64,000 bases of DNA from Zygnema circumcarinatum SAG 698-1b (taxonomy: Eukaryota; Plantae; Zygnematophyceae): the NCBI GenBank assembly GCA_037447605.1, contig CM074808.1, forward strand, positions 3,906,001 to 3,970,000, read 5' to 3'. A program made the translations under genes and the position numbers. Position 1 is the first letter of the stretch. Every line of letters begins with the position of its first letter. The notes beneath the pieces are model-generated. The model was given only the letters and a program-made list of their open reading frames with translations. It was not told the DNA's origin and did no database searches. Shown piece by piece: positions 20,751-61,153 of this stretch.

Positions 20751-23700
20751 ATGGCGGCCCGGGGAGCTCCCAATCCTCCGTACATTAGAACTAGGGTTCT
20801 GCGTCCAGAGGGGTCAGGGCCGGCTCTGCAGGGTTCAGACGTCCTCGAAGGGAGGCCTGATGCTGAAGCGGGAGAGGAGAGAGAGGAGGGAGGGAATCCT
20901 TCTGCAGGCGATAATGGGAATTGGAAGGTAAGGAATGGCTCTCGGAAGGGTTTTGCAAGAGCTGCAGGGTTCAGATTCCAACCGTAATTGTAGGCCTGCT
21001 TAGTTTCTTCTCTCAAACCAATGAGCCTGTGGAAGAATGTGAACCCTCGGATGACATTTTGAGGCTGAATTGCCTATCTACATGAGCAATTTGTAAATTG
21101 AAGCTAATTTTTGGTGTACAAGACAATGTAGCGGCATTGCTGTGATTTTAAATGGAGCTCGTGCATCTAATATTGTCGAATTTTAGAGAATTTGGAGCTG
21201 CATTGTCTGTTCCACCCTCTCCAAGTTCCCGCTCTCCTCACCTTCCTCTCTCTTCTCACCCTCCCTCTTCTCTCCCTGCGTTCTCTCGACTCCTCTCTTC
21301 CTACCTCTTTTCCTCTGCACTTCTCCCTCGCACTCCAAATCTCACTTTCCTTAAACATTGCCTTCGTCTTGCCTTTTTGTAGTAGATCGCAATAGAATTA
21401 CACTTAATCAGCGTTTCTTTCAATTCATAACGTTGCTTACGATCTGCTTTCTTACACTCAAATCTCTGACAGCCAACTTGTTTCCTCTCTCTCTTTCTCT
21501 CTCTCTCCCCTTCTCCTCTCTCTCTCCCTCCCTCTTCCCTCTCTCCTCTTTGTCTCTTTCGCTCCCTCTCCGTCTCCCTCTCCTCTCTCTCTCCCCTCCC
21601 CTCCCCTCTCTCTCTCTGCTCCCTAACAGGAGAATCCTTGCATTCGGTGCGGAAAAAGTGGCCATAAGCCGTGGAACTGCTCCTCAGCAGAGAAGTGTCC
21701 ACAGTGTTCGGCAGGTCTCTCTTGCAGAATAGTCTCGTCTCGATACCAGGATATGAAAAAGCTGCGACAGAAGGGAGACATCCTTAAAATGCGGCGAGAA
21801 TTGCAGAATCTTAAGCTTAAAGGCCACAAACCGGTGCATAATATTTATATGGAAGTAATCAACGCCTCTGTTGGGCAGAAGCAGGCAGTAGCTGCTCAAG
21901 CAGTCCTGGATGAGATGCAAGAAGATGGAGAAAAACCGCGATCTGTTTGTTTTAATTCCGTTTTAAATGGCTGGTGTGAGGCTGGGAGAATGGAGGAAGC
22001 TCTTCTAGTATTGGAGCAAATGAAGAAGGCCGGATGTGAGCCGATTGCAAGTACATATAATACAATTGTTAAGGGGCTCGGCTTAGCCGGACGACCGAAC
22101 GATGCTATGCAGCTGTTAAAGCAGATGCTTGAGTTGGGAGTAGAGAAAGCTAGACCCAATTTGATGACATTCAACACGCTGCTGAATGCGTGGTCGGAGT
22201 CAGGGAAAGTGGAGGAGGCTCAGAAAGTGTTAGGCATTATGAGAAGGGTGGGAGTGGAGCCGGACGTCGTGTCATATAACATAATTGTGAAGAGTTATGC
22301 AGCTGTTGGGAGAGCACAGAAAGCGGAGGCAGTGATTGAAGAGATGGAAAACTGTTACATAAGGCCGAATGAAAGGACTTGTGGCCTAGTAGTTCGAAGT
22401 TATTGTGATAAAGGGGATATGGGGAGAGCGTTGAATTTTATGGAGAGAATGAAGGATCGAGGAGTTCGACCTAATTCGGCTGTTTATAATACGGTTATAA
22501 GGGGCTATGCTAGGGCCCTTCAGCTCCCGCAAGCTGCGAAGGTGAGTTTTGTGGACATTCTTTGGAACTTGGGTTATGTATGCAGATAGTAATTTGCTGG
22601 AAAAGTTTGAAATCTACCTTCCAGGCCCACCCTCTTAGAATTGGGAGATAGAAAGGAAAAGGAAAAGGAAAAGAAAGGAAAAGAAAAAAAAGGTAAAGAA
22701 AAAGAAAGAAAGGAAAAGAAAGGAAAGGAAAGGATCCCTTGATGAGTCAAAACTTACTGGAACATAAAGCAACGAAGGAGTATGCTGGGCAATCGCCATA
22801 AGAGAGTCAAATTCTTTTCTCCTGATGTTCTGCAAGTGTAAATTTGTGCAGTGAGATAGCCTAGCTTCAACTCGATTGTAGAAAATAAGCTTCAGGGGTT
22901 AAGTTTGGCATGTTTTGGCTGTCTGATGCTGATCTCAATGTTCAATGCCTCCCACTCCCTCACTTTCCCCGTGATGCATCGCTGTTATTCAATTTCTACT
23001 CCTTGTAATGCAGGTACTGGAAGCCATGGATTCAGCAGGAGTGAAACCAGATGTTGTGTCATATTCAACAGTGATGAATGCCTGGGCAGAAGCAAGGCTC
23101 CCAGAGGAGGCTCGTAAAGTGTTCGAATCAATGAAGCAAGCTGGAGTTAAGCCGGATGTGGAGGTCTACTCTATCCTTGCAAAAAGTTATTCGAGAACGT
23201 GGAGATGTGAGGAGGCTGAAGCGCTCCTAAAGGAGATGGAGAAAGACGGAATCCGACCAAACGTGGTCACTCTAACCACAGTCCTTAGCTGCTACTGCTC
23301 CTGCGGGAAAGTCGATAGTGCAATGCAAGTTTTCCGCTCTATGGGGGAAATGGCAGCTGTTCCGAACATTCGCACTTACCGCACTTTACTATGGGGCCTC
23401 TTGGAGGCGAGGGAGCTTCAGAAAGCAGAGGAAGTTCTGGACCTTCTAGAAGCTTCCGGGCTTCCGCTAGATGCCAGGTGTTACGACCAGGTGGCATCCG
23501 CGTGGCAGTTATTAGGAAGGAGTAATGAGGCCCAACGGATAGCCAATAGGAAGCAGGCAGTGATGAGAGGAGGGATGTCGGGTAGAGGCGAGACGCGCAC
23601 GGAGAGAGTGCCACCTGGCAGAGTGCAGGGCGCTAATGACGTGTCGGTTCGGATGGGAGTGAGGGACAGCAGGCGAGTGACAGGTGGCAGCACTCAATTC

Positions 23701-24282
23701 GCGGATGTTCGGCAGCGGGGTGAGGAGGGTGAAGGAGGGGGGGGGCGAGAGAGGGGGTTGCGGGAGGGACCTAAAAAAACGAGAGAAGGGAGAGGAGGGG
23801 AACCGGAAAATGGGGGATCGCATGGTGAGGAGGAGAGGTACGTTAGTGACCAGATCGTGAATGGGCATGCGAGGGAGAGGGACAGGGGGAGGGAGAGGGA
23901 GCGGGAGTGGGAGGAGAGTGAGAGGGAGAGCGAGAGGGAGGGAGAGGGAGAGGGAGGTATGTTGGAGCTTGTAGAGGCTGAGAAGTTCAGCAGAGAGAGA
24001 GAGAGAGAGCAGAGAAGAAGACCCTATGCCAATGGGGTCGCTGTAGGCAGCAATAAAGTGGGCCCAAATGGGGCTTATGTGAAGAAGAGTTTGGATACGG
24101 ATAGCAAGTTTACAAATGCCGAGTCTATTAGGGTTCCCTTCCATCGTCAGTCTCTGAAGAAATTGCAGATAGACCCTGGGCCAAGGCCGGAGCCTGCCCA
24201 CTCTAATTTCAAGTGCCTTGTGGGGCCCACTATGGGAAGTGGGCATGGAGGAGTAGCAGCAAGGCTGCTTCTGCTAGTCTAG
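20751..24282 (+). CDS. P-class pentatricopeptide repeat protein (resembles the Arabidopsis At5g25630/At5g21222 type) with N-terminal CCHC zinc knuckle
   Basis: Exons 20751-20927, 21630-22541 and 23014-24282, all phase 0. About 11 PPR motifs (e.g. VCFNSVLNGWCEAGRMEEALLVLEQMKKAGCEP, VVSYSTVMNAWAEARLPEEARKVFESMKQAGVKPD). The leading CPQCSAGLSCRIVSSR recalls the CKSCVEGSSCRTVRSR segment of At5g25630 (from memory, not aligned). Confidence 0.93.
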
Positions 24283-39105: not shown

Positions 39106-41991
39106 TCTCCCTCTCACTCTCCCACTCCCTCTCCCCTTTCACGCTCTCTCTCTCTCTCTCTCTCCCTCCCCCCCTCAACCCTAACCCCCGCCACGCGGCC
39201 CCGGCTCCCTCTGCCGGCGGCGCCGGCCACTGCTTTCCAGAAAGGCCGCGAGATGCCCTTCTCGGGGCTGCCGCGATATCGGATACTTCCACGGCCGGGC
39301 GGCCGCCCCGCTGTACGCCCCATCCAAACGCCGCGCGCCACGTGGACACTTTTGCCAACGTGGTGCCCTTCTACTGGCCGACGTTCTGCTAAAGACCCGA
39401 GTTCGTACGGCCATTACACGACAGGCTCTTGGGGTTTGTACGAATGGCGGCCAGGAGAAAAGCCGTACGATACGAGATTGTACGAAGGTTGATCCTTTGA
39501 GTACGACATCCGTACCAGCCATTTGTCCCGGGGCCAATAGGTACAGGGTTTTGTCGCGCCAGTGGGGAGCCGAATCGGATCCAGGCGCGGCTGGACACGT
39601 ATCGGATCTAGCCCCTAAGGCCTAGGATTTTCGCGTCACCTGGTGCTGACAGGTGATGCGTCAGCCAGTTGCAAACTGGTGGAAGCTGGCCCTCTGGCTT
39701 CCGCTGATGGTTTTTTGGAAGTTGCGAAGGTGGCGAAATTATTGTCGATATGGTGTGAGCCAATGAGAGTTCACAAAAGAAGAGAGGGATGTCAGTGTGT
39801 CGTATTATCTTGGCCGATACTAACACGACAGGAAGGACTCCTCTGTACAAACCGAATCCCTGCAACTGTATTTTTTCGAGCGCCAAATCGCGGCACCACG
39901 TGATCACCCGCGGCTCCAACGGTCAGCAGCCAATCAGAGGGTGCCATTTGATTCACTTGTCGCACGCGGGCAAACACTAACGGCGCTTTGTACTCATTCA
40001 GTACTCATGCCAGCTGTAATCCGGGCGGTATCCGCTTGTCCGGTAGCGCGACGCCCGGTCGGGAAAAGCCCGCAACGCGGTCGGTGCCGAATGTCGCCGT
40101 TTTATGGGCGGCTGCAGGGGGTGAAACCGTGGGGCGCGCCAAAAATGTTTTGTCCAGCAAATGACATGTGAACATGTAACAGAGCCACCGAGGTCGAATA
40201 TTATACGGTTTCGTCAAGAGTCTCAAAAGTCAAGCATTGGATTTCTGATTTTGTGCAGCCGTCATATCGCAAATTGATTAATATCAATCGTGGCCGTCAT
40301 TCATTGGTTTATTAGGCCAGCTTTTAGCTAGCTGCCAAAATTCCACCGACAGCATTTAGTGAAAAGGTAGACAGGCTTCCGAGCACGTGTCTTGGATCCC
40401 TGTCGCTTGTGCCGACAATGTCGGTGAGACGCGACCGCAGACTTTCGGGTAAAAGCCAGGTATGCTGACTTTCAGCGAATTAGGTTAAATGTTTCTGGCC
40501 TTTGTGCTGATGACTTCGATTCCCCGGCTCGGTGACGGCGCCGTACGACAGTGCCGGTCGCGCGTTAACGCACGCCGACCGGAGGCCGGCCGGCGACCGA
40601 CCGACACCGACCGCGCCCGCGCGCTGCGTACGTCACCATGCGCCAGTCAACAGCACACATGGCAGCCTACCATAGGGCAACGTGCGCGGTCAGCCGCCTC
40701 GTGGCAGGGCTGCACGGAGGACTCTTGGCAGGCCCGGGGGGCCGCGGCTGCCGCGGGCCCTACGCCGTCAGTGCGCCGTATCGCAGCCGACATGTACGGC
40801 ACCAATCGCGGGTTGGGCTCCACGTGAGTGGCGTACTTTGGTAGAGATTCGAATTGCACAGGATCGATCGGCCATCGCGATCTTTATCTGATCTGATCTT
40901 GTAAGGATTGAGGCCTTGGTGCTTCCTTGAGTCGCGCGGGGAAGGCGGGGGAGCCCTCGCTCCCTCCCTCACCTCCCTGAGTCCCCGCGCGCATGTACGG
41001 CATGTTAGGATGGGTGAATGGACGGACGGACGGATGGGATCGCTCTGGTTTAGGGATGGATTAATTACGACTATATAATATATATTATATTATACAACTG
41101 TGGCGACTAGATAACGGCTGATATATATTACTTTACAACGCCTTTACAACATGTACGGTCGGACGGTCGGACGGTCGTATGGTCGTACGACTGTACGGTA
41201 TTATGCGGTACGAATGTACGGTCGAGCACTAGCAGACGAGTGAACCAGACTGACCCATTTCGCAACGCCAACGTGTAGCACAAGATAAGTGGGGTTAAAA
41301 GGAGATTGCTGAGCTAGTCGCAGATGCTGTACGGCCACCCGAGCGTCCGTGCTGAAACTGACGTAAGGTTGGGGTGGTGCTGTGGGTCTGCCTGCAGCAT
41401 AGAGCCAGGATCCGGGGGATTCAGAGGTACGCGCANNNNNNNNNNCTCTCTCTCTCTCTCTCTCTCTTACTTAGCATCTGTTGCTGTAACTGAAGAGGAA
41501 GGAAAAGAAGAAAGAAGAACAAGACAACAAACCACACAGCAAATACAAATACTAAGCCCAGCACTAAAAGACAAACAAGCATCACTGACATCCCATCTAC
41601 TTAACACTGACAATAGATCTTGAGTCTTGGTAGTGACAGTCCCTGATTGGCCAACTGCCCACTGAGAGGCCTGACTGACTACGTGGAGCCTTCGGATAGG
41701 TCAACGAATGATAATCGGCGGCCTTAGGCGGTGTTCCCGAGTGCGCCTTGCTGGATGGTGTGCTGTTCCGTGGGCCGCCAACGCATGGCGCCGCCTTCTC
41801 TCAATCTCCGTTGGCAGCTCCTGGATTCCGTTGATCCGTGACACGGAAGAGGCATATGTCAAGTACAATTGAACTGACGCAAATCCGTCGAACGCAGCTC
41901 CGTTACGCTACAAACGCCAATACGCAGGGTTCGTCAAATAGGGGATTTCGGCTTAAGATAGGGGACTGTCCCCTAACTTGGTTTTGTAGAA

Positions 41992-42689
41992 GGGGACGAC
42001 TATTTACAGTGTACGTTTTCTGAATGTAGTGTACGATTTCGCGGGGTAGCAAAAAAAAGGTTTTTTTTGGCGAAAAATGTTGTTTCACACTTCTCAGAAT
42101 AGATACAGACCTTTTTTCGTCGGATGTACGGATGGTGATTTGAAATGTACGAAGCGCGCGCGTCTACAAGGTATTAGGGCGCAACACGTGGAGCGACATG
42201 ATTGGTCGCGGAAACATATGACGTGGCAAGTATGTTTGGGACCGTGACGTGACGAAACGAGACGCGACAAAAGTGGAGTCCGCGGACGGCAGTCGGAAAT
42301 GGCGGGAATTAAAACTGACAGATTTTTCCTGAAACACGCTACGTTATGTGCCCTATCTTTTTTTGTCAGTTTGAATTCCCGCCATTTCCGACTGCCGTCC
42401 GCGGACTCCACTTTTTTCGCGTCTCGTTTCGTCACGTCACTCCCAAACATACTTGCCATGTCATATGTTGCCGCGACCAATCATGTCGCTCCACGTGTTG
42501 CATCCTTATACCTTGTAGACGCGCGCGCTTCGTACATTTCAAATCACCATCCGTACATCCGACGAAAAAAGGTCTGTATCTATTCTGAGAAGTGTGAAAC
42601 AACATTTTTCCCCAAAAAAAACCTTTTTTTGCTGCCCCACGAAATCGTACACTACATTCAGAAAACGTACACTGTAAATAGTCGCCCCC
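41992..42689. mobile_element. Foldback-type MITE with ~330-bp inverted arms
   Basis: Arms 41992-42320 and 42364-42689 are near-perfect reverse complements around a 43-bp spacer. Flanks are TTGTAGAA / TTGTAAAA (7/8 TSD match). Confidence 0.85.
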
Positions 42690-42699
42690 TTGTAAAAAC

Positions 42700-43741
42700 G
42701 GAAAATGATACAGCGGCCCCACTTTTTGGATATCGGCGCCCCTTTTGGGAAAAATTGTACTTTCTTTTTTGGCTAATCACCCCCCCCCCTTGGATCTTTC
42801 GGGAGGAGAGATCTTGTCGACAATCGGACCCCGCGCCTCGCGCGCAGGATCCGACCGTGCACCGACGTACGGCGCCGCGCATCGCGGCGCGGCCCGCGAG
42901 ATGCGGCGAGCCTACGGAAACGTTGTCCTCACCTGACCCGTTTGGGTCCGAGGTTACCACGTGGCAGTCTGCCATTGGACAGCCATGCTGCCGGTCCCCC
43001 ATGCCGATACAAGTGGACCCCCATAATATTTTCGCCATGGTTTCGGCAAATACTGGGCGAAAATATTGTAATTTGCAAATATAAGGTCCGTGTTACCAAT
43101 AGGCGAGCGGTATTATGTTAGAGTTCATGTCTGTTCGTACGTATCGTATCGTATCGTACCGTGATTTAGATACATGAACTCCTATTGGTGTCGTACGTAT
43201 ACCGTACGACTTAGAGATTTTATTCGTTTTTACCGTACAGTAAAAAAGCGTGACCCATGTTTGAAATCCGTTTCGATTAACAGATTTTGTATTGGAGAAT
43301 AGGTCAGGTTAGGTTAACACCCCTAATACGTTAACATTGAGTTACCGTACAAAAAGGTGGTTTCGGCAAAATCGGGGCGAATTTCTTGTGGGACGCACTG
43401 TACAAGGTGGAAAATATTATGGAGGTCCACTGTATCGGCATGGGGGACCGGCAGCATGGCTGTCCAATAGCAGACTGCCACGTGGCAACCTCTGACCCAA
43501 ACGGGTCAGGTGAGGACAACGTTTCCGTAGGCTCGCCGCATCTCGCGGGCCGCGCCGCGATGCGCGGCGCCGTACGTCGGTGCACGGTCGGATCCTGCGC
43601 GCGAGGCGCGGGGTCCGATTGTCTACAAGATCTCTCCTCCCGAAAGATCCAAGGGGGGGGGGCTGATTAGCCAAAAAAAAGTACATTTTTTCCCAAAAGG
43701 GGCGCCGATATCCAAAAAGTGGGGCCGCTGTATCATTTTCC
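42700..43741. mobile_element. Mutator-like palindromic non-autonomous element (terminus GGAAAATGATA)
   Basis: Perfect 9-bp TSD TGTAAAAAC (42691-42699 and 43742-43750). Arms 42700-43009 and 43433-43741 are near-perfect reverse complements. Confidence 0.9.
43010..43432. mobile_element. Tc1/mariner-type MITE nested at the palindrome centre
   Basis: TA|CA(A)GTGGACCCCCATAATATTTTC ... GAAAATATTATGGAGGTCCACTG|TA. The internal sequence is homologous (inverted) to 63099-63627. Confidence 0.85.
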
Positions 43742-43843
43742 TGTAAAAACACGTAAATATGGACTGTACGGACGAAACCGTGCACGTACGGACGTTCATC
43801 ATTTCCCAGCACTGCTACCGTCGAGTCTGATTTTTCAGTAATT

Positions 43844-44122
43844 AGGGGGATTCAGACCTTGACCATCGCCCGCGGAATTGAAAGATTCCGCCGGCGGAAA
43901 GGTATTGATTTCGATTGCAGAATTCGGTTCGGAAACCGCGGCTCCCCCCGAACCTGTCTGTCCCGTCCGTACTTCGAAATAGGTGACAAAAATGAGATAC
44001 GGGCTCGGCGCCCGAGCCTGTCGAACATCACCTTTTGGCGAAAAAGGCCTGCCGTACAACGGGGAATTGGCCCGACGGGCTCGCAGAATTGGCTTGGCGC
44101 TGGTCAAGGTCTGATTCCCCCT
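43844..44122. mobile_element. MITE with AGGGGG..TCAGAC termini and 3-bp ATT TSD (PIF/Harbinger-related, tentative)
   Basis: 22-bp TIR AGGGGGA(T/A)TCAGACCTTGACCA with one mismatch. Flanks ATT (43841-43843) and ATT (44123-44125). Confidence 0.8.
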
Positions 44123-45001
44123 ATTGGATGGGAGAAAGACGAGTTTCAAAAGAGGTTGACAGACTTGATGAAAGTTTGTCGCTTGGTTGACAGACTTTTC
44201 ATTGGAAGGCATTCTTCACTGCAAACAGTTTGATAGTTTGACCTCTCTTCGAGGGTCTCTTTGAGTAGTTTGCATCACTTCTATAGCTGTCTTGTTCAGC
44301 CTAAAACTCCTAAGGGAGTGAGACCATTTTTCATTTCATTTCTAATTTTAGTTCCTATTTCAGTTTTTCTTTTGTGACTACACCTAGAATTTCCAAGGTT
44401 ATGATTTGGAATAGAGTTTTTGTGAGGAAATTTCAAGACTATGATGGATTCTTAAGTGATACTTGGAGTAATTAATGATGGATGGAAAAGGAAATAGAGA
44501 GCTTAGGATTGGATCTACAAAATTTCCGTGCAATTGGGTTTCTGAATAAGCAACTATATGTTGTGATTGCCAAATGCACAGTTGTTCTAATTGATTGGTA
44601 AAATTTACCAATTTATAAGAGTCGAAGAGGTTGCACCAGTTTCTAAAGCCGTGTTGTTATACCCACAAGTAAAGTTCATATACATCATTGCTATCGTGGT
44701 TGCAACTGCAATTCATTTCCTTTTTGTTTTTAACCAAAAAAATGCTTTTTTGGGGCTTGTGTGGTATTTAAGTTGAAATCACGTAAACTAATCTCAAAAT
44801 CTTACATAAATAAGCTATTTACGATGTTTAGGGGATCTCCCCTATTTGACGAACCCTGCCAATACGACCTAATTTTGGTATGGTACGACCGTACGAGTAC
44901 GGTCATACGGTCGTTAATTGTTCAAAACGAGTGGGTATAATATAATAAAGTCTTTTACTTTATAATATATTACTACTTTTAAACCCGTTGTAAAGTATAT
45001 A

Positions 45002-45485
45002 CAGTCTAATCACGTTATAGTGACACCGTTTATAAGAACAGCATGGATATACTGACTTTTTTTCCGGGAACGGAATTGCACCACTGCAGATCCTGCGCCA
45101 GTAGTGACGCCATTACGGATATAATGACGTTGAAAAACCCTGATTGTTACTATATATTCAAAATTTCGATATTATCCACTCACGTATTGGAATATGCGTT
45201 ACAAATAGATTACAACCGTACACGGTATCGACTAATATCGTCAGATATCGACTTGACCGTACATATCAACTTGTCCGTACAGATGCTCACTAGGGTTCGT
45301 ACACACCTACCCACGTGACGACTGCCCAAAAAGTACAATGTACGGTATCAAAGTCGTACGGATATACCGCAAAAATATATGTAATAACATTGTTACTATA
45401 AATGTGAGATGACAAACGGGTCATTACCGATATAGTGACACAAATGTGTGGGGACCGACACAGTCACTATAACGTGATTAGACTG
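45002..45485. mobile_element. Tc1/mariner (pogo-like) MITE
   Basis: Perfect 23-bp TIR CAGTCTAATCACGTTATAGTGAC / GTCACTATAACGTGATTAGACTG, flanked by TA on both sides. Confidence 0.88.
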
Positions 45486-45832
45486 TAATGTATTCGGAAT
45501 TTATAACGCGGGCCATCCCTACTCTGGTTCGACGCCGGCCGTACAAAAGCAGTATTCTTCTCCCAGTCTGCCACCTACAGTACAGTACAGTACCGTGGTG
45601 TACCGTACTGACTCTGTCATTCCGATTTCGTGCACGTGCCGTATCCCCAACCCTACGGGGTCGCTTATGATTGGCTGTTGATTCGCTCCACGTGACGACT
45701 GATTCTGTTCCATTTAATTATGCCACGTCAGCTGTAATTTGTTGACCCCATTCCACCATCACTCCCCATTGCTCAGCTTGATTCCACACGATATTGATTC
45801 TGACCTTTAGATCAACATCATCCCTAAAATTT

Positions 45833-46537
45833 GGGAAATGATACTTCGCTCCCTTGTTGGGTTATCCCGTCCCCTTTTTTGAAATCCCGCCCTCAGAATT
45901 TGGCTATTCCGCCCCCTGCTTTGGATATCCCGCCCCTCCCCTTTTTGGATATTCACCCCCTGTTTCCTCCTCACACATCAGCGCAAAGTTCGTAAAGGCA
46001 TTCGCAAAGAGAGAGACCAGAGGAGAGGAGAGGAGAGAGAGCAGAGGAGAGAGAGAGCAGAAGAGAGAGAGAACAGCGGAGAGAAAGCGCAGAGGAGAGA
46101 GAGCAGAGAGACTAGTGGAGAGAGAGCGCAGGAGAGAGAGACTAGGAGAGCGAGCAGAGGGAGAGCAGAGGAGAGAGAGAGAGAGCAGAGGAGAGAGAGA
46201 GAGAGCAGAGGAGAGAGAGCAGAGGAGAGAGAGCAGAGGAGAGAAAGCAGAGGGAGAGCAGAGGAGAGGGAGAGCAGAGGAGAGACTAGTGGAGAGAGAG
46301 CGAGAGAGAGAGAGAGCGAGAGCGAGAGAGAGAGAGAGAGAGAGAGANNNNNNNNNNGAGAGAAAGAGAGAGAGAGAGAGAGAGAGTGAGAGAGAGAGAG
46401 CAGAGAGAGCAGAGGAGAGGGAGCAGAGGAGGAAACAAAAATCGATTGGGGAGGAAATAGCCGAAATGCGAGGGCGGGATTTCGAAAAAAACGGGGCGGG
46501 ATAACCCAGAAGGGAGGGGGGCGAAGTATCATTTTCC
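45833..46537. mobile_element. Mutator-like MITE (GG(G/A)AAATGATA termini) with a GA-rich satellite core
   Basis: Degenerate ~80-bp TIRs (GGGAAATGATACTTCGC.. / ..GCGAAGTATCATTTTCC). Flanks TAAAATTT / TAAAACTT (7/8). The interior is GAGAGCAGAGGAGAG repeats with a 10-N gap. Confidence 0.7.
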
Positions 46538-46565
46538 TAAAACTTCACCTATATTTTCGGCTACT

Positions 46566-46700
46566 AGGGGGTGTCAGACTTAACGAAATCTTACGAACAA
46601 AAAAGTTTTGTAAGTACTCCGCCGCACCAGGATTGCTATGTCACCGAAGTACTCGTTCTGGTCTCAAACTTACGAACAATTTTTAAGTCTGACACCCCCT
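46566..46700. mobile_element. 135-bp MITE with AGGGGG..TCAGAC termini and 3-bp ACT TSD
   Basis: Perfect 18-bp TIR AGGGGGTGTCAGACTTAA. Flanks ACT (46563-46565) and ACT (46701-46703). Confidence 0.82.
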
Positions 46701-47255
46701 ACTATGACCTAACTTGAGTGACACCTGCATTCGACTATCGCGTCAGGCAGCGCGGCGCTGTACTGTTCAAATCTTAGATCAAATCGAATCCAGACCGGTG
46801 GATCGCCCCGATCGGCTGAGAAGATCCTGCGGATCCTTTTCAGCCGCGCCCCCGGGGCCCCTGGCGAGTCCGGCGGTGACACGTGTCCGACTGCGAGAAC
46901 AGAGCGGATCTTCAAGAAGACCCAATCGTGACGTGACGTCACGACCCGCGATCCGGCGCATGTCCGACACGAAGCCAAAGACTCTGGAAGCTTCTGGAAG
47001 CTTCTGGAAATACGACTCTCAGGAAGAACGTTCAGTAGGGCTGTACAGTACAGTACAGTACTGTACATTACAGTAGTACGGCACGCACGGCACGTACAGG
47101 AGCAAAGCTGCCTAGGCATGTTGGCATGGCCATGACGACGCTATGACGTCATCGGTCCATCGCCTGCACGCCGTACATCATAGCACGCGCTGATGCATGC
47201 GAGGGAGGGAGGGAGGGAGGGAGGAGAAGGGAGACGGAAGAGGGAGGGAGGGCGG

Positions 47256-50045
47256 ATGGACCGGGAAGGAAGGGAGAAGGGCGGGCGGGGGAACGCGGCG
47301 GGGGACAAGAAGCGCAAGTTCGTGTACGGGAACTACAGCCGCTACTATGGCTACCGGGCATGCCTCTCCCGCTCTCTCTCTCCCGCTCTCTCATCCGCTA
47401 TCTCCGCTCTCTCGTCCGCTCTCTCTCCCGCGCTTCTGAACTCTAGTGTCCTTACAAACCCTAGAAAGTCTCTGAACATGGAGACCCTGCATGCTTCACA
47501 AAAAATGGGATCCCTGATATAGGACATACTGTAGAATCGTACAATGTTCGTAAACGCTAGCAGACTGAACAATCCTGGAAGATATCAGAATCTTGCAATC
47601 GCTGAACCCTGAACTTTCAAATTTGGGTTAAGGGTTCAGGGTTCAGTTTCAATGTTTCAATTTTTTTTTTTTTTAACTGCAATGCCTGAGGTCTCCAAGA
47701 TCTTGGAGTTGTGGAGAGCTTTTGACGCTTGAATGCCTCTAAACTGTGGAAGCCATCGTTGCCTGACCAACCCTAGAAATTCACTTCCAGATCTCACTTC
47801 TCCTCATGACGTCAAAGACTAAAGACCTTCAAGGATATCTCAGAAGCGAAAAACATCCTCCCTCTCTCACTCCCACTCTGTCTCTCTCACTCACTCTCAC
47901 TCTCACTCTCGCACACTCGCTCTTAAAACGTATTGTGAAAGCCTTGCAGACTCGAAATCTGAAATGAAACAGCTTTTAAGAATGATTTTACAGGCATGTA
48001 AGAACCTATGACGATTAAGTATGCAGGGATCACAATCCTAATTCCAACTTTATCCCCACAAACCCTACCTCTCCTCTAACCTTACACGTAACCTTACCTA
48101 ATCTCGATCCTAAGCTCATCCTGAGCAACTTAGCCCTAATGCCAAACCCTAAATTGTGAATCTGATCCTTGAGCATTTTTGTGAGCCCCGTTACTCTATA
48201 GGGAATTCTGAAGATTATTTTGACTGATTCTTCAGGTAGGAGCAGCGCTGGAGGAGGATCCTCGTCTGAAACATTTCAAGAGAGAGTGGTTTGAAGGGAG
48301 AGACTGCCTCGACATCGGCTGCAATGAAGGCCTCATCACTATTTCTGTTGGTGAGAATTCATGTAACCTTCAAAAATGACGAAAATTTGTTTTTAAGGCG
48401 TGGTAAACGCCGCTAATTGAGTTTGGTTGGAGGATGGATGCTCTGTTTCTTCAACTGTGTGTTGGCTGGGAGGGAAACAGGAGGGGAGTGATAGAGTGGG
48501 AGCGAAAGGAGAGGGAGAGAACACAGAGGAATGATGAATTTGCTCTGTTTGGTACATGCAGCACAAAAATTCCTTGTTAAATCCATGGTGGGAGTGGACA
48601 TAGACAAAGGTGAGAACTTCATGCCAACGGCTGAATACCACGAGTTGAAGGAAATTAACATTTCTCAACCTTGATTGAAGGAAATTTGACAAAACGCACA
48701 CTCGATATATGCAAAATAAGCCCACGTTCCTCCAACATATTAGTAGAGATCAGAGGAGCGGAGTGATAGTTTGCGGAAGAGAGGGAGAGAGAGGGTGGGG
48801 GTGGGGAGGGGAGGGAGACGTGTGATCTGTGAGTGCTCTGTCGTGCATTGCAGGTCTTGTAGTGAGTGCCAAGCAGCACTTGGGCGCGGAAATGGCTCGA
48901 CTTCGCCGTCAGGAAATAGGTAGAAATAATAACCGAAATGCGACGACGATATCTCACAGCAATGTGGAGGCAGAGAGAGGAGCTGTTGAGAGGGAAAAGG
49001 GTTCAAGGCAGCAAAGACGGAGAGCGGCTGCTTCAGGGGCTGGGAGAGAGAGCAATGGAGTTAGTGGGAGAGAAGGGGAAGGTTCTCGAAGCCGAACAGA
49101 GGTCACACAGAAGGCTGAAGCTGAGAGAGAATCTACAGGTGATGGTGTTGGAGATGAGAGAAGTGGAGGAGGTGTTGGAGAGGATTTGCGGGAAGCGAGG
49201 GAGGAGAGGAGGAATGGTGAAGGAGGTAGTGGGAGAACAGGGGAAGAGAGAGAGGGGGAGGGAGTGGGAGTGGGAAAGGAGCTACAGGTGGGAGGGGAGG
49301 GGAAGGTATGTGGCCTTGGGGCAGAGGAACTGGAAAGAAGAGTGCGATTCCATGCGGAGAATTTCTTAGAGACGCGAACGGGTGATTCTATGTATGACGT
49401 GGTGCTATGGTGCGCACTGCTCATCCGACGCATGTGAATTGTCAGCATGATTAAATAAAAGAAAGAAAGAAAGAAAAGAGAGAGAGGGAGAGAGAGAGAG
49501 AGAAGGGGAGGGCGAGAGAGGAGGGGAGAAGGGGAGAGACAGTATTAATAGTGATGGCTTGTCTTTGTATCCGTGTCTTCATGGCTGCAGTCTGAGTGTT
49601 ACGAAATGGATACATCTCAACTGGGGCGATGAGGGACTGAAGCGCTTCTTTGGAAAGATATTTCGAGTTCTCCGACCGGTAAGGAGCCCATGGCAGGAAA
49701 GACTTCAAGAAATTTGTGCGTTTTTTTTTATTTTTTCTTGAATTTGATAAAGAGTTTGATGGGGGGTTCAGAGACTTCTAGTTCACTCTTTTCTATGCGG
49801 AAGATAAGGATGATGAATTGCGGGTATCATTTTTCTAAGCCTTTCTTCCCATGGCATGGAGGGAGGGAGGAATACTGATTCTTGAGGAGTACTGATTCTC
49901 CGTTTGCAGGGAGTACTGATTGAGGAGGAGTACTGCTTCTCCGTTTGCAGGGAGGAATACTGATTCTGGAGCCGCAGCCGTGGAAGTCGTACCAGAAAGC
50001 AAGATCCTTTTCTCCGGTAGACTCACGAATATCCTCTCTCCTGCA

Positions 50046-51165: not shown

Positions 51166-51424
51166 AAACCCTAAAAGCTTCAATGGCGTGCCCTCAGCAC
51201 CCATCCCTAAACCCTAAACCTTGAACCCTTAAATCTAAACCTAAAAACCTTAAACCCTAAATTCTAATCAGGTTGCAATCTTCCCTCCTTCCACTTTTCC
51301 CTCGCGCGTTCCCTCGTCCCGCATGCATGACAGCTGGGGAAACCCTAAAACCCTGGAGGTTAAGGTTTTAGGTTAAAACCCTAAAACCTTAACCCCTGGA
51401 CCAGAAACCCTAAAACCCTAAAAC
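51166..51424 (+). promoter_or_regulatory. Telo-box (AAACCCTA) cluster upstream of INTS6
   Basis: At least seven AAACCCTA(A) motifs lie within ~260 bp before the ATG at 51503. Confidence 0.6.
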
Positions 51425-51502
51425 CCTTGCAGTGGCGAAGGTCTCATTTTGAAGTTTTTCCGTGACCTCTCTCGTTGCGACACGTGTCAGCGAGCCGGCA
51501 AG

Positions 51503-52018
51503 ATGCTTGTCGTTTTCGTGGTCGACACGAGCGCCTCCATGAACCAGAAGGTCGCGAGCGGCCTCTCTCTCCTCGACTGCGCGAAGAGCGCCGTCGAACA
51601 TTTCCACAAGGTGCGGATTTTAGGGTTCAGGGTTTAGGGTTCAGGGTGAAGAACTCAGGGTTTAGGTTCAGGGTTCAGGGTTCAAGGTTCAGGGTTCAGG
51701 GTTCAGGGTTCAGGGTTCAGGGTTCAGGGTTCAGGGTTCAGGGTTCAGGGTTCAGAGTTCAGGGCTCAGGGTTCAAGGTTCAGGGTTGAAGGTTTAGGGT
51801 TCAAGGTTTAGCGTTCAAAGTTTAGGGTTTAGGGTTCAGGGTTTAGGGTATAAGGTTCAGGGTTTAAGGCTTAGCGTTCAGGGTTTAGGGTTTAGGGCTT
51901 GGGATGGTTCTAGGGTTCAAGATCGTAGGGCTTCGGCCTTTAAGCGTGATGTTAATTCCATTTTTTTCGGCTACAGGTGCGACAGCGAGATGCGTCATGC
52001 CGACTGGATAGGTCAGTA

Positions 52019-52095
<77 letters not shown>

Positions 52096-55071
52096 CTCTC
52101 CCTCTCTTTCTTCCCCATCAAAATTAGAATCTATGACTTCCATTAATTACTGTAGATTCTTTCTGATCATGTTTTTGTCGTTATTTATCATGGTTTAGGT
52201 CAGGGGGCCTCCTTTTGAGAAAAAATAGGCCGAGCAATACGGTCTTAAGCCAAATTCATGCAATACTAAAAATTCTCTTCTGTTTTTTTATTTTCTAATA
52301 ATTACTTTTGACAGATACATGCTCGTCACCTCTGAAGGTGGTCCGGGGGCCATTCAGGTACATTATTCAGATTTGTGTTTATTTCACTATCAGAATTTCG
52401 ACTGTACTCACATCAAGAATAGAGACTGCGTGTGCTTATAAAAGCCTATCTCTTTCCCCCAAACGGTCAACTTTTGAGTCAATATTGGTCAACTTCCGAG
52501 TCAACGTTTTAGGGTTTTGAGCCAACTTTGAGCCAAGTCAAGTTCACTTGTGTCAAAATGACTCCTCGGTTTGACTCCTGCGTATATTTTTTTTTTTTTT
52601 TTTTTTTAAAGGTGTTCGACAAGTACCCGTTCGCCAGTTTCCTGCGCGTTCTGAAGGGCGTGCAGGCACGGGACCTGACCTGTACGGGCGCGGCCGTACA
52701 GCGGACCTTCGACTTCCTGCAGCTGCAGCGACTGGCCAATGACGTCGACCGCTTTGGTGAGTCCAACGCACAGAAAGAAAGAAAGGAAGTAAGAAAGAAA
52801 GAAAGGAGGAGAGAAAGAAAGAATGAAAGAAAGAATGAAAGGAAGAAAGAATGAAAGAATGAAAGAAAGAGAGAAAGAAAGAAAGAATGAAAGAAAGAAT
52901 GAAATAGAGAAAGAAAGAAAGAAAGAAGGAAAGAAAAACAAACTACAAATTCAACTTCCTTGCTCCTTACAAGGTGTTTTCCTTAACTTACTGATTTCCT
53001 TATTCTATGGTTTAATGGAAATCTTTAAGATGGGAGGCGAGTGTGGCTGCTACAGGACAGGGACGGAATCCATGTTCGATCGATCCAACGATGGTGATAC
53101 TGCTCACGGACGGAACTGAACTCACCTCTCTGGTAACCCTCCATGCAGAAAATTGCTCCTAATTTCCTTTTTCTTCGTCAGTAGTCCGTTGGTTTGAAAT
53201 GACGGCACACGCAGCTCCTTAACATAATCTCATTCTTAAAATCCTCCAACACATTCAGAATACCGTATGGAAATGTTAGATACAACGCAAACTTGGTTTT
53301 TGCATGAACTTTGCTTTTTTTTTATTTTTTTCTTTTGCGATCCTGTCTGCCAGGCTGGAGTTTCCAACACTCTCATGCTTCCGGGTGGTCCCATGCCGAT
53401 AGGCGCTGAGCTGGCAATGCAGCCATTCCGTTGGGACCAACGGGTGTTTGCGACAGTTTTACGGTCAGTTGAACTGAACTGAACTGAACCGAGCCGCACC
53501 GAAACTGAGGAACTGTAGGAGCTTCTGTTTACTCCATGCATGGCCCCATCTTCTACACCTCTTTGAGAAACTCGTTTTCTATGTGTTCGCTCTGTGCGGC
53601 TTCCCTGTTCCAGCAGACGCACAGAAAGAGGGCAGCCGCGTTCCATGTGAGAAGTTTCCGTTAGTTTGGGGGCGGCGGTTTCAGAATTCCGTCCGTAAGC
53701 GGAGCAGCGCTTGAGCGGAGCGGACCAATCCCGCAAAACGGGCCGATTTCTGGCAGCCAATCAGCTGTCGCCATGGATGCCAACATTTCGGCATTTTGCG
53801 AAGTGACTGGGTATATAGAAAAAGCTTCCTTTCTCTCCCTCTCCCGCACGGTCCTTTCCGGGTCTTATCCCGTTCCGTTTCAGTTACCTTCAACTCCATT
53901 CTGTTCTCTTTCCCCGTATACGGACGATATGCAGAGAGAGACATAGATAGGTTTAGTCTCAGCTCTCCGGTTTGCAATATTTGTTCTGTCACAAAAAACG
54001 ACGGAGAATTGACAAANNNNNNNNNNNNNNNNNNNNNNNNNNNNNNNNNNNNNNNNNNNNNNNNNNNNNNNNNNNNNNNNNNNNNNNNNNNNNNNNNNNN
54101 NNNNNNNNNNNNNNNNCCAAGTTGGGCCATGTTCGCGTGCAGGTGGAGGAGCCCGAGCGCGGGAAGTCCCGCGCCATGTTCGGCAATCCGTACAGGCAGG
54201 AAAAGGCGGAGGGCCCCGACGAGGCCTGGCTGGAGGGAGGCAATGGCCAGCTGACACGTGGCAGAAAGAGACGAAAACGCTCCGAATCTCCTGCTAGCTC
54301 TGCCAGCCTGGCAGGCTCCGCAGAAGCCATGGTAGCTCCTCAAGGAGGAGATGCGGCAACAGCGCAGGTAGTGGGAGAGAGAGAGAGGGAGAGGCAGAGA
54401 GAGAAAGAGAAGGAGAGAGATAGGGAGAAGGAGAGGGAGGGAGAGAGAGGGACGGTGTCTGCGGCTCCGGTCTCGGCTATGACTCCTGGGAGCAGCGAAG
54501 TTCCATCTGTTGATTCTGTTGGAGTCAGTTTGGTGAACGGAACGGAGATTGGGACGGGGGCTGTACTGCATGGAACGGGGGAGGCTAGTGTGGGCCCCAC
54601 TTCAAGTGACGGTGGAACTTTGGTGGAGGTCGGGAGCGCTATGAGCAATGGGGGCCAAGTGGGGGAAGGAGAGGGGGGTGGGAGAGAGGGGAGAGAAGAG
54701 AGGGAAGGAGATGGAATGGGTGGGCAGTGGGAAGCGGAAGGAGGGGGCGGGAGAGAGGGAGGGGTGATAGGGAAGGAGGAGGAGCGTTGGGAAAGTGGCA
54801 AGGTAAGTTTGGAGCGAAGACAAATAGGAGGACAGGGGGTAGTGGTTGGGAGAGAGGTGGGAGAGAGTGAGGGAGGAATGGGAGAGGAAGAGAAAGTTGT
54901 TTTACCGGGGCCCCTTGCAGAGCAGAAGGAACTGGTGGCCTTTGTGCTCTCTGTTTTCAGAAGGCTGCGGAGCACAAAAGGCGAAAACTTCAAAGAGGTG
55001 AGAGAGGAAGGAGAAGGCTCTCTCGCTTCCTCTGTTCGAGACACATGCAAAATTGTTGAAATGAAAGAGGG

Positions 55072-56879: not shown

Positions 56880-59603
56880 AGCAATCCTATCAGACTTGGC
56901 GGTTTCTTCGGCCCAGATCCTCTAAGATCCTGCCACGTCATATCTCTTTTGTCTCCTTGGACACTCCCCGCGGCCTTCCAGTTTTCCCTCAGATCTTCCC
57001 TGCCACGTCAGCCTATCCGTATGCCTCCTACCAGCTGGCGTCCGGATACGACATTTCGGCCTTGTCGGTGCCGCCTAGGGCGCCCTCCCCGGCCAGCCTG
57101 TCTTGTCGTATCAGCCGCCCGGCAGTTGCATTCCGTTTCGTTTTTTGGCGCGCAGTGCGGTGCCGGACCGGCGCGCGATCACTCCCTCCCTCCCTCCCTC
57201 CCACTCTCTCTCCCTCCCTCGCCCACCCCTCCCTCCCTCCCTCCATGGTTATGATCTTGGGGTCAAGGAATAGGGTTCAGGTTTAGGGTTTCCCCTCTCT
57301 CCTATGCCGGCCATGCGCCCCCATCAGATGGCTCTGGCCATGGCAAAGAAGGAGAAAGATAGGGAGAGGGAGAGGGAGAGGGAGAAGGAGAGGGAGAGGG
57401 AGAAGGTGAGGGAGCGCGTCCCCTTGAAGGCTCCGCGGAAGATGGACATTCCTCCGCTGCAGCTGCAACCCGACCCTCCAAACGAATCCATGCTTGACAC
57501 GTGGCAGACCGCCACGTCATCCTCCTCCTCCTCGTCCTCTCTCCGAGGCGGCTCTCCCGCCACCACTCTCTCCTTCCCCTCCGACTCGCCAGCTGGCAGC
57601 AGCGTAGGGGACCTGCAGGACCCCGCCGCGCTCTCCCTCTCTCTCTCTCTCTCCCTCCCACGCCACGTGGAACAAACTCCGTCCTCCGTCGGCCACAACG
57701 GAGACGGCGGCGCATGGAGCCTGGCGGACGAGGAGGCGGGAAAGAGGGAGAGGGAGAGGGAGAGGGAGAGGGAGAGGGAGGGAGAGGGAGAGGCGGCTCC
57801 GACGGGAGAGGGCGGAGGGGACGGAGGGAGAGGGGCCATTTCCCCGGCAGAGTTGAGGGAGGAGAAGGGAGGGGGGGGGGTTGGCGGGAAGTCTCCCGCA
57901 GGGGGCAGCAAATGGATGGCGCTTTTCAGCCCTCGGAGTGGCGCGGGTTTAAGGTCGCCTGCGGGCAGTCCGCGGGGGGAGGGTTTAGGGTTTTGGGAGC
58001 AGAGCAGGGGGCTGTCTGAGGGCTCCGTTGAGAGCGGAGGTTCCCTTGCGCCCGACGGAGTTCAGTCGGTGGGGTCGCCCACGTCTGAGAGAGGGCCTCC
58101 CACTCCCAAGGTGCGAATTGCTCCTCCTCTTGGGTTTTTTTTCTTTATGGTTTTTTTAATTAGAAACATAGAAAGAGATTTAATATGTTCGCGTGTTTAA
58201 TTTTAGTCTTCATTGTTTTTTTTTTTTTTTTTTTTTNNNNNNNNNNAGCAATCCTATCAGACTTGGCGGTTTCTTCGGCCCAGATCCTCTAAGATCCTGC
58301 CACGTCATATCTCTTTTGTCTCCTTGGACACTCCCCGCGGCCTTCCAGTTTTCCCTCAGATCTTCCCTGCCACGTCAGCCTATCCGTATGCCTCCTACCA
58401 GCTGGCGTCCGGATACGACATTTCGGCCTTGTCGGTGCCGCCTAGGGCGCCCTCCCCGGCCAGCCTGTCTTGTCGTATCAGCCGCCCGGCAGTTGCATTC
58501 CGTTTCGTTTTTTGGCGCGCAGTGCGGTGCCGGACCGGCGCGCGATCACTCCCTCCCTCCCTCCCTCCCACTCTCTCTCCCTCCCTCGCCCACCCCTCCC
58601 TCCCTCCCTCCATGGTTATGATCTTGGGGTCAAGGAATAGGGTTCAGGTTTAGGGTTTCCCCTCTCTCCTATGCCGGCCATGCGCCCCCATCAGATGGCT
58701 CTGGCCATGGCAAAGAAGGAGAAAGATAGGGAGAGGGAGAGGGAGAGGGAGAAGGAGAGGGAGAGGGAGAAGGTGAGGGAGCGCGTCCCCTTGAAGGCTC
58801 CGCGGAAGATGGACATTCCTCCGCTGCAGCTGCAACCCGACCCTCCAAACGAATCCATGCTTGACACGTGGCAGACCGCCACGTCATCCTCCTCCTCCTC
58901 GTCCTCTCTCCGAGGCGGCTCTCCCGCCACCACTCTCTCCTTCCCCTCCGACTCGCCAGCTGGCAGCAGCGTAGGGGACCTGCAGGACCCCGCCGCGCTC
59001 TCCCTCTCTCTCTCTCTCTCCCTCCCACGCCACGTGGAACAAACTCCGTCCTCCGTCGGCCACAACGGAGACGGCGGCGCATGGAGCCTGGCGGACGAGG
59101 AGGCGGGAAAGAGGGAGAGGGAGAGGGAGAGGGAGAGGGAGAGGGAGGGAGAGGGAGAGGCGGCTCCGACGGGAGAGGGCGGAGGGGACGGAGGGAGAGG
59201 GGCCATTTCCCCGGCAGAGTTGAGGGAGGAGAAGGGAGGGGGGGGGGTTGGCGGGAAGTCTCCCGCAGGGGGCAGCAAATGGATGGCGCTTTTCAGCCCT
59301 CGGAGTGGCGCGGGTTTAAGGTCGCCTGCGGGCAGTCCGCGGGGGGAGGGTTTAGGGTTTTGGGAGCAGAGCAGGGGGCTGTCTGAGGGCTCCGTTGAGA
59401 GCGGAGGTTCCCTTGCGCCCGACGGAGTTCAGTCGGTGGGGTCGCCCACGTCTGAGAGAGGGCCTCCCACTCCCAAGGTGCGAATTGCTCCTCCTCTTGG
59501 GTTTTTTTTCTTTATGGTTTTTTTAATTAGAAACATAGAAAGAGATTTAATATGTTCGCGTGTTTAATTTTAGTCTTCATTGTTTTTTTTTTTTTTTTTT
59601 TTT
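56880..59603 (+). repeat. Exact 1357-bp direct duplication across a 10-N gap (probable assembly artefact)
   Basis: 56880-58236 and 58247-59603 appear identical (offset 1367, identical ORF sets). The first copy ends in a poly-T run at the gap. Confidence 0.9.
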
Positions 59604-61153
59604 GGGGTGTGCAGTTGAGGTTCAGCCGAAGTCCTTCCGTTCCGTCGTCGCCAAAAAATTTCGTCGGTCCGTCAGAAAAGTCAGAAGGCCGGAGTTCATT
59701 CGGGGCCTCAAGAATCATTCAAAGGGAATTTTCACGGCAGTCGGGATCGCCTTTGAAACTGACAATAGAAGTGCCGGACTTCGGGCAGAGAAGCAGCTTC
59801 GACACGGAGGATGAATCTGAACCGGAAATACGTCCAAGTTCAGGCCTCGGAATGTGTCTCCCACAGGCCTCCACTCCCCCTCTCCCTCCGTCCCGTGGGA
59901 GCCATCGCCGACAGCAGTCAACCAGTGTCTTAGAACTGAAAAGTACCCCCCCTCCTCCAGCCCAAGAAATTCCCTTTTGGGCTCGAATTCCGGTCTCTAA
60001 TTCCAGTACTCCGGAAAGCTCTTCGGCGGCTTTAGTCCGAAAATCAAAAGCGCGGATTCAACGAACCCGGACGATTGTGATCGAAGTGGAGGGGGAGGAG
60101 TGTTCGGAAGACTCGCGGTACATTTCGGCGGTTTTGAACTCCCTCGGAAAGGGAAGCGTGGAGGATCAGAGAGATGTGGCGGCCATATTGAGGGGACTCA
60201 TAAAGAGGCAGGCACATAACAAGAGGAGTTTGGTGCTGTCCGGGGGCATTCCGACCCTTGTCAATGTGATGAATAAGTCGACAGACCCCGATACGGTCGA
60301 ACATGTCGTAACGATTCTTTTGAATGTCGCGAATTCGCAGCAATGTGAGAGTGAGCTAGCGGCTGCTAGTGGTTTCGAGGCCCTTGTGAAGGTGTTGAAG
60401 GGGGGCAACCCGGCAGCGAAGGCGAATGCTGCAGCGGCAATTTTTGTGTTGGGGGAGAATCCGGAGCATAAACTGCGACTATGTGAAGCTGGGGCCGTTC
60501 AACCGCTGCTTAAACTGATGGTTGGAGGTACCCCCAGAGGGAAGAAAGACGCAGCTCTTGCTCTTTTCCAGTTGACTCAGCACGCAGTGGGAGCTCGAGA
60601 AATGGCGGAAAGCGGAGGGGTGATGGCTCTCACCGGCTGTTTGATAGAGGGAGTGGAAGGGATGGAGGAGAAGGTCATGGCTGTGTTCGTGAACTTAGCC
60701 AAAATTCAGGAAGGGAGGCAGGCAGTCGAGGAAGAGGGAGGGATTGGGGCCCTCGTGGAGGTGATAGAGACGAGTGGGAGGAGGAGAGCGAGGGAGGATG
60801 CAGTAGGGGTTCTATTACAGTTGGCTACAACGAGCAGTTCGGCGTTCGATATCATCCATGGAGAGGCCCTAATGCCCTCCTTAGTGGCCCTAATGGAGAA
60901 GGGATCCTCTAAGGCGAGGTCCAAGGCGAAGGCCCTAATGGAGCTTTTGAGGACAGCTGGCACGCAGGGAGAGGACGCCTCGCAGTACGCCATGGCAGCG
61001 TCGGTGTCCTCCGCGGGAGGAGGGGTCAAGGTCGGGGCCATGGCCGCCCACACAATGTTGAATGGGTGGAAGGGAAGGCTGCCGCCGCTTACTGCGGAAA
61101 ATAACTCCCCTCGAAAAAATGGATGCTTTGGGTGCCTAGTGGGGCTCGAGTGA
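58671..61153 (+). CDS. Armadillo-repeat protein (PUB4-like ARM array, no U-box) with a long disordered N-terminus
   Basis: Exon 58671-59478 (AAG|GTGCGA) joins exon 59615-61153 in phase 0. ARM repeats include SGGIPTLVNVM, NPAAKANAAAAIFVL, GAVQPLLKLMVGGTPRGKKDAALALFQL and MPSLVALMEKGSSKARSKAKALMELLR. Exon 1 is also present at 57304-58111 in the duplicated copy. Confidence 0.9.

Follow-up and report, generated by a model that had tools for sequence, protein, structure and literature searches.

Nested non-coding TIR elements within one hAT-like element of the streptophyte alga Zygnema circumcarinatum

Introduction

Small non-coding TIR elements of maize and rice form nested multimers in which families are interinserted, each with its own TSDs, and more than 10% of rice MITEs are found in multimers of this kind, which arise from independent insertions (according to a passage of PMC5172404 that cites Jiang and Wessler, 2001). 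A rice MULE carrying the Tourist-like MITE Os0548 likewise shows a MITE nested within a DNA transposon; its lineage comprises 107 highly similar elements, and the composite kept transposing (PMC3903597).

Here we describe a locus of the same general kind in a window of 64,000 nucleotides from Zygnema circumcarinatum SAG 698-1b (assembly GCA_037447605.1, contig CM074808.1, positions 3,906,001 to 3,970,000; all coordinates below are window positions and the elements are treated as unstranded). The nest differs from the maize and rice multimers in being four deep, with TSD classes of 8, 8/9, 2 and 3 bp brought together in a single 2.9-kb element, in belonging to a streptophyte alga, and in having long-arm foldbacks in place of short MITEs as two of its guests. 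Unlike the Os0548 composite, it is single copy in the data searched. The nest is real and tidy, yet nothing unusual where a plant-lineage genome is rich in transposons. It adds one specimen to a known phenomenon and is of little importance in itself, DNA transposons being routinely nested in plant-lineage genomes.

Results

The outermost element, or shell, occupies 41925–44858 (2934 bp). Its ends are formed by the TIR CAGGGTTCGTCAAATAGGGGA, which starts CAGGG and matches at 21 of 21 positions, and each end abuts a copy of the 8-bp TSD CCAATACG (41917–41924 and 44859–44866, 8/8 identical). The first-pass annotation had recognized both the 21-bp TIR and the perfect TSD, and these stand; the start that it gave, 41924, is corrected to 41925. 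At up to three mismatches the TIR has two matches in the window, both of them the shell ends (0.01 expected), and no second copy of the shell termini was found in the window at that threshold, in JGI metagenomes or in viral contigs. Cargo makes up 2039 of the 2934 bp, which leaves an empty backbone of 895 bp (37.7% GC), in agreement with the sizes first proposed (about 2.0 of 2.9 kb, and ∼ 900 bp). Five of the ten TAGGGGA motifs of the window lie within the two ends of the shell, including the palindromes TAGGGGACTGTCCCCTA and TAGGGGATCTCCCCTA.

The 8-bp TSD and the short TIR of the shell (hAT range ∼ 5–27 bp) are those of hAT elements, whose TIR tips follow the consensus (C/T)A(A/G)NG, as the shell tip does. 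The hAT target preference nTnnnnAn is weak and statistical; CCAATACG, with C at both position 2 and position 7, departs from it, although a single site proves little. With non-autonomous, Ds-like hAT elements (Ac TIR CAGGGATGAAA) the shell has in common the 8-bp TSD, the short perfect TIR, the CAGGG tip, short motifs that recur close to either end and zero coding capacity, but, unlike them, it is tied by sequence to neither an hAT transposase nor an autonomous element. An hAT transposase comprises a BED finger, a DDE core and an hAT dimerisation domain; a six-frame Pfam search of 44124–44858 (the ten longest stop-free segments, each at least 39 aa) gave no relevant match at E ≤ 10. Since the shell is non-autonomous, the absence of a transposase is expected. 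One reverse frame in the AT-rich backbone, NEKWSHSLRSFRLNKTAIEVM..., had resembled an hAT C-terminus by eye, but Pfam returned nothing for it at E ≤ 10 and the resemblance was dismissed. We describe the shell as a non-autonomous, hAT-like 8-bp-TSD TIR element; it could belong to another superfamily with 8-bp TSDs, such as P. Here and below, the names hAT, Mutator-like, Tc1/mariner and PIF-like are putative and derive from TSD length and end sequence only.

The first guest is a 698-bp foldback (FB1, 41992–42689) in which a 43-nt loop separates two arms of ∼ 330 bp. Complementarity between the arms is 96.6%, with indels (blast pairs 41990–42320 with 42364–42691), and folding as a DNA hairpin gives −405 kcal/mol (z = −51). 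These best ends combine a 13/14 TIR with an 8-bp TSD whose left copy, TTGTAGAA (41984–41991), and right copy, TTGTAAAA (42690–42697), agree at 7 of 8 positions. Alternative bounds were tried and set aside: a TA TSD with arms starting at 41989, TTGTA as a 5-bp TSD, and GGACTGT as a 7-bp TSD beside poor TIRs. The 8-bp TSD with the 13/14 TIR gives the best fit and is the probable boundary; TA or TTGTA could still be correct.

Next to FB1 lies a 1042-bp palindromic foldback (Pal2, 42700–43741). Its 9-bp TSD TGTAAAAAC (42691–42699 and 43742–43750) is perfect, 9/9, and falls within the 9–11 bp of Mutator-like elements; long inverted arms are present, and the MULE-like assignment follows TSD length and end sequence. 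Arm complementarity is 98.4%, again with indels. Without the MITE that it contains, Pal2 is a spacer-less element of 617 bp, and removal of that MITE together with one TSD copy leaves a perfect palindrome through ...GCCGATATCGGC.... The termini GGAAAATGATAC and the subterminal motifs recur in a downstream foldback of the same kind (45833–46537), which ends in GG(G/A)AAATGATAC and aligns with Pal2 over the terminal 95 bp. Its 9-bp TSD has decayed (TAAAATTTG/TAAAACTTC, 7/9), and a GA microsatellite of ∼ 420 bp, enclosing a 10-N gap, forms the core. Viral contigs contained no match to the Pal2 terminus pattern.

The MITE inside Pal2 (43010–43432, 423 bp) is Tc1/mariner-like, with a TA TSD (43008–43009 and 43433–43434), a 21/22 TIR and CA(A)GTGG ends. 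It is inserted in the central TA (CCGA-TA-TCGG), one of the 16 TA sites of empty Pal2 and the exact axis of the palindrome. A related minus-strand copy (∼ 63100–63625) carries CAGT ends and TA flanks, and its subterminal blocks are 88–95% identical. The TA duplication expected of Tc1/mariner is seen in both copies and in a further Tc1/mariner-like MITE (45002–45485), which has CAGTCTAATCACG ends, TA flanks and an inverted repeat that matches at 25 of 25 positions, TA included. Within the TIR, resemblance to Tc1 is confined to the CAGT tip. A conserved 25-mer of the inner MITE was absent from metagenomes.

The last guest is a 279-bp MITE (43844–44122) with a 26/28 TIR, flanked by ATT (43841–43843 and 44123–44125). 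Its ends, AGGGGG-NN-TCAGAC, are also those of a 135-bp MITE at 46566–46700, whose TSD is ACT. The TSD is 3 bp long in both members and reads A-N-T (ATT and ACT), whereas the 3-bp TSD of PIF/Harbinger-Tourist MITEs is typically TWA. Three of the cargo families therefore have relatives in the window; the shell and FB1 have none, and blast found no further FB1 copy there. Because these two are single copy where searched, it is structure alone that points to their membership of repeated families.

All pieces of the nest proposed in the first pass, TIR elements with differing TSD lengths inside one 8-bp-TSD shell, were thus located, and the three further elements that it placed after the shell are those at 45002–45485, 45833–46537 and 46566–46700. 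Its suggestion of continued element density downstream also holds: TIR elements make up ∼ 89% of 41925–46703, and a TIR scan finds hardly any elsewhere in the window. A larger element around the shell (∼ 41.05–41.2 versus 44.87–45.0 kb) was suspected by eye but unsupported by blast.

No coding features were detected in the nest, no tRNA, Rfam or miRNA-like features in 41.5–47.2 kb, and no Pfam family in ten ORFs from 34.9–54.6 kb. A 533-aa ARM ORF had no near-identical match, the best (∼ 42%) being in flowering plants; for the PPR ORF the protein search found no record.

The insertion sites within the nest are CCAATACG for the shell, TTGTAAAAAC for FB1 and Pal2, the axial TA for the inner MITE and ATT for the 3-bp-TSD MITE. 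Excising each element with one TSD copy restores clean sequence, and simulated insertions reproduce 41925–43843 but for one base. The order first deduced was hAT, foldback, Mutator-like, Tc1. Those steps that follow from containment are borne out, whereas the placing of the foldback before the Mutator-like element is not: the right TSD of FB1 (42690–42697) and the left TSD of Pal2 (42691–42699) overlap by 7 bp, and simulation of FB1-first and Pal2-first insertion gave identical products, one substitution off the observed sequence. Because of this overlap the order of these two cannot be deduced, and arm divergence (3.4% in FB1 versus 1.6% in Pal2) does not differ significantly. The lesson is general: two insertions with overlapping target duplications cannot be ordered by them.

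Discussion

We interpret the nest, with a probability of roughly 0.8, as cut-and-paste transposons, non-coding and dead-end, that have piled up where a genome of the streptophyte-alga type is free of genes. In such a history, a non-autonomous element with hAT-type ends would have inserted at CCAATACG, its transposase cutting with an 8-bp stagger. The 895-bp AT-rich backbone would then have taken three separate insertions, either here or while still part of an earlier shell copy: the 698-bp foldback (8-bp TSD), the 617-bp spacer-less MULE-like foldback (9-bp) and the 279-bp MITE (3-bp). The two foldbacks would have shared one 10-bp A-rich site, and the Tc1/mariner-like MITE would later have entered the central TA of the MULE-like one. 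Accumulation of this kind could reflect that the host pays nothing for insertions into existing transposon DNA and that MITEs favour other MITEs as targets. We infer that the insertions were independent events at the present locus.

It is distinctly unlikely, in our view, that the cargo was gained earlier and that the 2.9-kb shell transposed as one unit with all or part of it, in which case the nest would record the history of a lineage, not that of the locus. The rice MULE with its nested Os0548 MITE provides a precedent (PMC3903597), and the flawless shell TIR and TSD (21/21 and 8/8) stand beside an FB1 that has a mismatched TSD and 3.4% divergence between its arms. At that divergence, however, only about one difference is expected over the 29 bp of TIR and TSD, and the probability of seeing none is ∼ 0.37, so that the contrast is uninformative. 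The shell ends were not seen a second time in the window, the JGI metagenomes or the viral contigs, and FB1 lies just 59 bp from the left tip of the shell, a subterminal region in which hAT elements such as Ac/Ds require binding sites. An assembly artefact, with palindromes or junctions created by chimeric reads or misassembly, is very improbable. Chimeric library molecules are a known source of long palindromes, and the window holds ten N-gaps, the two nearest to the shell lying upstream at a distance of under 500 bp (41436–41445) and downstream at under 1.5 kb (46348–46357). Yet there is no gap within 41925–44858, the foldback arms are imperfect and contain indels, and three of the elements have relatives elsewhere in the window. 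Moreover, TSDs bound each of the elements and their length goes with the type of end, an arrangement that a chimera would not yield.

Passive accumulation may also be set against targeting, in which hairpin or cruciform DNA of the foldbacks draws insertions at base and apex. Several features are consistent with such a structure-guided hotspot: the FB1 and Pal2 targets are offset by 1 bp (∼ 2% by chance on an 895-bp backbone), the Tc1-like MITE occupies the axial TA among 16 TA sites, and TIR elements crowd 41925–46703 while being scarce in the remaining window. We nevertheless regard it as unlikely. Only two insertion events are involved, both spotted post hoc, and the shared A-rich run may simply suit both transposases. 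Axial insertions may be survivors, if uninterrupted spacer-less palindromes are unstable, and the core of the third foldback (45833–46537) is a microsatellite, not a transposon. We speculate, as a long shot, that foldbacks act as structural landing pads and that transposases of unrelated superfamilies prefer the base and apex of extruded cruciforms; this would, if true, explain why the landing site of one foldback is a single base pair away from the end of another, and why a TA-inserting MITE lies on the exact axis of a spacer-less 617-bp palindrome.

As a teaching example the locus is clean, with four TSD classes still readable within 2.9 kb. It also provides the ends and TSDs of five element families, which could seed a repeat library for the alga.

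FB1 and Pal2 are in addition two carriers of a promoter-type box, CCAAT-N9-CCACG, within foldback arms. The box occurs once per arm in FB1 (42187–42205, minus strand; 42477–42495, plus strand) and once per arm, near the axis, in Pal2 (42960–42978, minus strand; 43464–43482, plus strand). The layout of the boxes is the same in both, whereas the ends differ and no shared sequence is detectable beyond the box. Box-bearing foldback arms of this kind bear on the idea that such elements spread promoter modules.

Structure of the shell

Both ends and both flanks of the hAT-like shell (41925–44858) were verified: its 21-bp TIR, CAGGGTTCGTCAAATAGGGGA, is a perfect inverted repeat, and CCAATACG directly abuts the element on either side, as expected from the intact element with a perfect 8-bp TSD described in the first-pass annotation. 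With up to three mismatches allowed, the TIR has two matches in the 64 kb (0.01 expected), which are the shell's own ends. Each end also contains a short palindrome based on TAGGGGA (left TAGGGGACTGTCCCCTA, right TAGGGGATCTCCCCTA); 5 of the window's 10 TAGGGGA motifs fall in these two ends, the sort of subterminal repetition that would be expected of transposase-binding ends. Superfamily names of all elements are based on TSD length and end sequence. On these grounds (8-bp TSD, short TIR, a CAGGG tip like that of Ac) the shell is most reasonably classed as hAT-like. hAT elements have a weak target preference, nTnnnnAn, which the shell target does not fit, and the shell may belong to another 8-bp-TSD superfamily. 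It has no relative in the window.

The four guest elements sum to 2039 bp, in line with the earlier estimate of ∼ 2.0 kb of cargo in 2.9 kb. The empty backbone and the empty palindrome (see below) were constructed by script from window coordinates. The backbone (895 bp) is AT-rich (37.7% GC versus 50.9% for the window) and has no recognisable protein remnant. Its 44126–44858 part (36% GC within a 51% GC window) matched no coding sequence, RNA or repeat, and tRNA and Rfam searches of the nest region were likewise without match.

The guests and their neighbours

The guests proposed earlier are all present. The first foldback, FB1, is a near-perfect hairpin (arm complementarity 96.6%, loop 43 nt) that folds as DNA with −405 kcal/mol (z = −51). 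A systematic boundary scan gave one clearly best reading of its limits, 41992–42689, with a TIR of GGGG(A/G)CGACTATTT (13/14) and an 8-bp duplication, TTGTAGAA/TTGTAAAA (7/8). No relative of FB1 occurs in the window. Pal2 (42700–43741), a palindrome with 98.4% complementary arms and a perfect 9-bp duplication, TGTAAAAAC, is called MULE-like solely by that TSD and its long arms. Removal of the Tc1/mariner-like inner MITE (43010–43432) and one TA leaves a 617-bp palindrome, uninterrupted through ...GCCGATATCGGC..., and the MITE therefore occupies the TA at the axis; Pal2 without the MITE has 16 TA sites in all. The fourth guest, a MITE at 43844–44122, has AGGGGGATTCAGAC ends with ATT on either side.

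Three further elements lie downstream: a MITE with TA flanks (45002–45485), a foldback with Pal2-type termini (45833–46537) and a MITE of the AGGGGG-NN-TCAGAC type with ACT flanks (46566–46700). The foldback's core is a GA microsatellite (46008–46428, ∼ 420 bp) holding a 10-N gap (46348–46357), so its true length is uncertain. About 95 terminal bases of this foldback align with Pal2, and TTGG(A/T)TATC...CCCC motifs are common to both. The 43844–44122 and 46566–46700 MITEs are alike over ∼ 20 terminal bases; the duplications of these 3-bp MITEs read A-N-T, versus the TWA usual for PIF/Harbinger. A TA-flanked relative of the inner MITE, with subterminal blocks 88–95% identical, lies at ∼ 63100–63625. 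Three cargo types (Pal2, inner MITE, 3-bp MITE) thus have relatives within the window. The shell ends and an inner-MITE 25-mer had no match in the metagenomes searched, nor did the shell ends and the Pal2 terminus pattern in the viral contigs searched.

The window contains six copies of the ER-stress-element-type box CCAAT-N9-CCACG (0.09 expected). FB1 (42187–42205, 42477–42495) and Pal2 (42960–42978, 43464–43482) each carry one per arm, facing outward; the other two (3309–3327, 40289–40307) lie in unique DNA that may represent promoters. Apart from the box, FB1 and Pal2 share no detectable sequence and their ends differ, so that a promoter-type box is carried by two foldbacks with different ends.

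Insertion order

The order proposed earlier (hAT, foldback, Mutator-like, Tc1) stands where it follows from containment: Pal2 predates the inner MITE, and the shell's origin predates the guests. The placing of FB1 before Pal2 does not. The right duplication of FB1 (42690–42697) and the left duplication of Pal2 (42691–42699) overlap by 7 bp, and TGTAAAA is therefore present three times. Starting from the ancestral site as inferred, TTGTAAAAAC, we ran a simulation of each order with the real element sequences. The products were identical, differing from the observed 41925–43843 by a single base (41989); TSDs thus cannot order the two foldbacks. Arm mismatches (11/326 in FB1 versus 5/308 in Pal2) hint that FB1 is the older, but the difference is not significant. 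Guests may have arrived at the present locus or been carried in with the shell; containment fits both.

Origin of the cluster

TIR-element DNA makes up ∼ 89% of 41925–46703, and a TIR scan of the whole window found almost no such elements outside this cluster, so the clustering is real. A hotspot created by cruciform targeting has been considered. Two placements look non-random: the target sites of FB1 and Pal2 are shifted by 1 bp relative to each other (chance ∼ 2% on the 895-bp backbone), and the inner MITE took the axial TA, a 1 in 16 choice. These are just two observations, made post hoc; a common liking for an A-rich run would explain the targets equally well, and survival of interrupted palindromes would do the same for the axial insert. 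The other idea is that the shell could have moved with its cargo as one unit. A rice MULE carrying a nested Tourist-like MITE, with 107 highly similar elements (PMC3903597), is a good precedent. The shell's flawless ends carry no weight here: at FB1's divergence, 29 bp would stay unchanged with a probability of ∼ 0.37.

More than one in three candidate coding MULEs contain nested elements (PMC3903597). Insertions of MITEs into MITEs have long been described from maize, rice and mosquito. Multimers, from independent insertion, make up > 10% of rice MITEs (PMC5172404). Nesting being thus documented, the shell nest is a neat new specimen of a known kind of thing.

Genomic setting

The window (∼ 51% GC) has plant-type, eukaryotic gene content. 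Pfam identified PPR repeats (ORF 23008–24282) and plant U-box-type ARM repeats (ORFs 11–1417 and 59552–61153). The ARM ORF best matches U-box proteins of flowering plants (∼ 35–42% identity), with a Closterium protein lower in the list; no near-identical protein to the ARM or PPR ORF was found in the protein collection searched. Two 298-aa ORFs (57304–58200, 58671–59567), 1367 bp apart with the same nested ORF pattern, suggest a tandem duplication; the first had no Pfam match. Inverted duplicated blocks at ∼ 11965–12220 and ∼ 17840–18030 (at least 84 bp, reaching past the scanned TIR) enclose ∼ 5.7 kb, including a very acidic 736-aa minus-strand ORF (15587–17797) without Pfam match. The blocks are probably not a transposon, as no TSD was seen. 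An interstitial telomere-like array (51205–51897; also 47628–47643) mixes plant-type CCCTAAA-related repeats with CCTTGAACCCT, in several inverted pairs. Ten N-gaps interrupt the window (4553, 20677, 25498, 28733, 32901, 41436, 46348, 54017, 58237, 61157); the one at 54017–54116 is the single 100-N gap, and the 10-N gaps mostly fall within homopolymer, purine-rich or microsatellite tracts.
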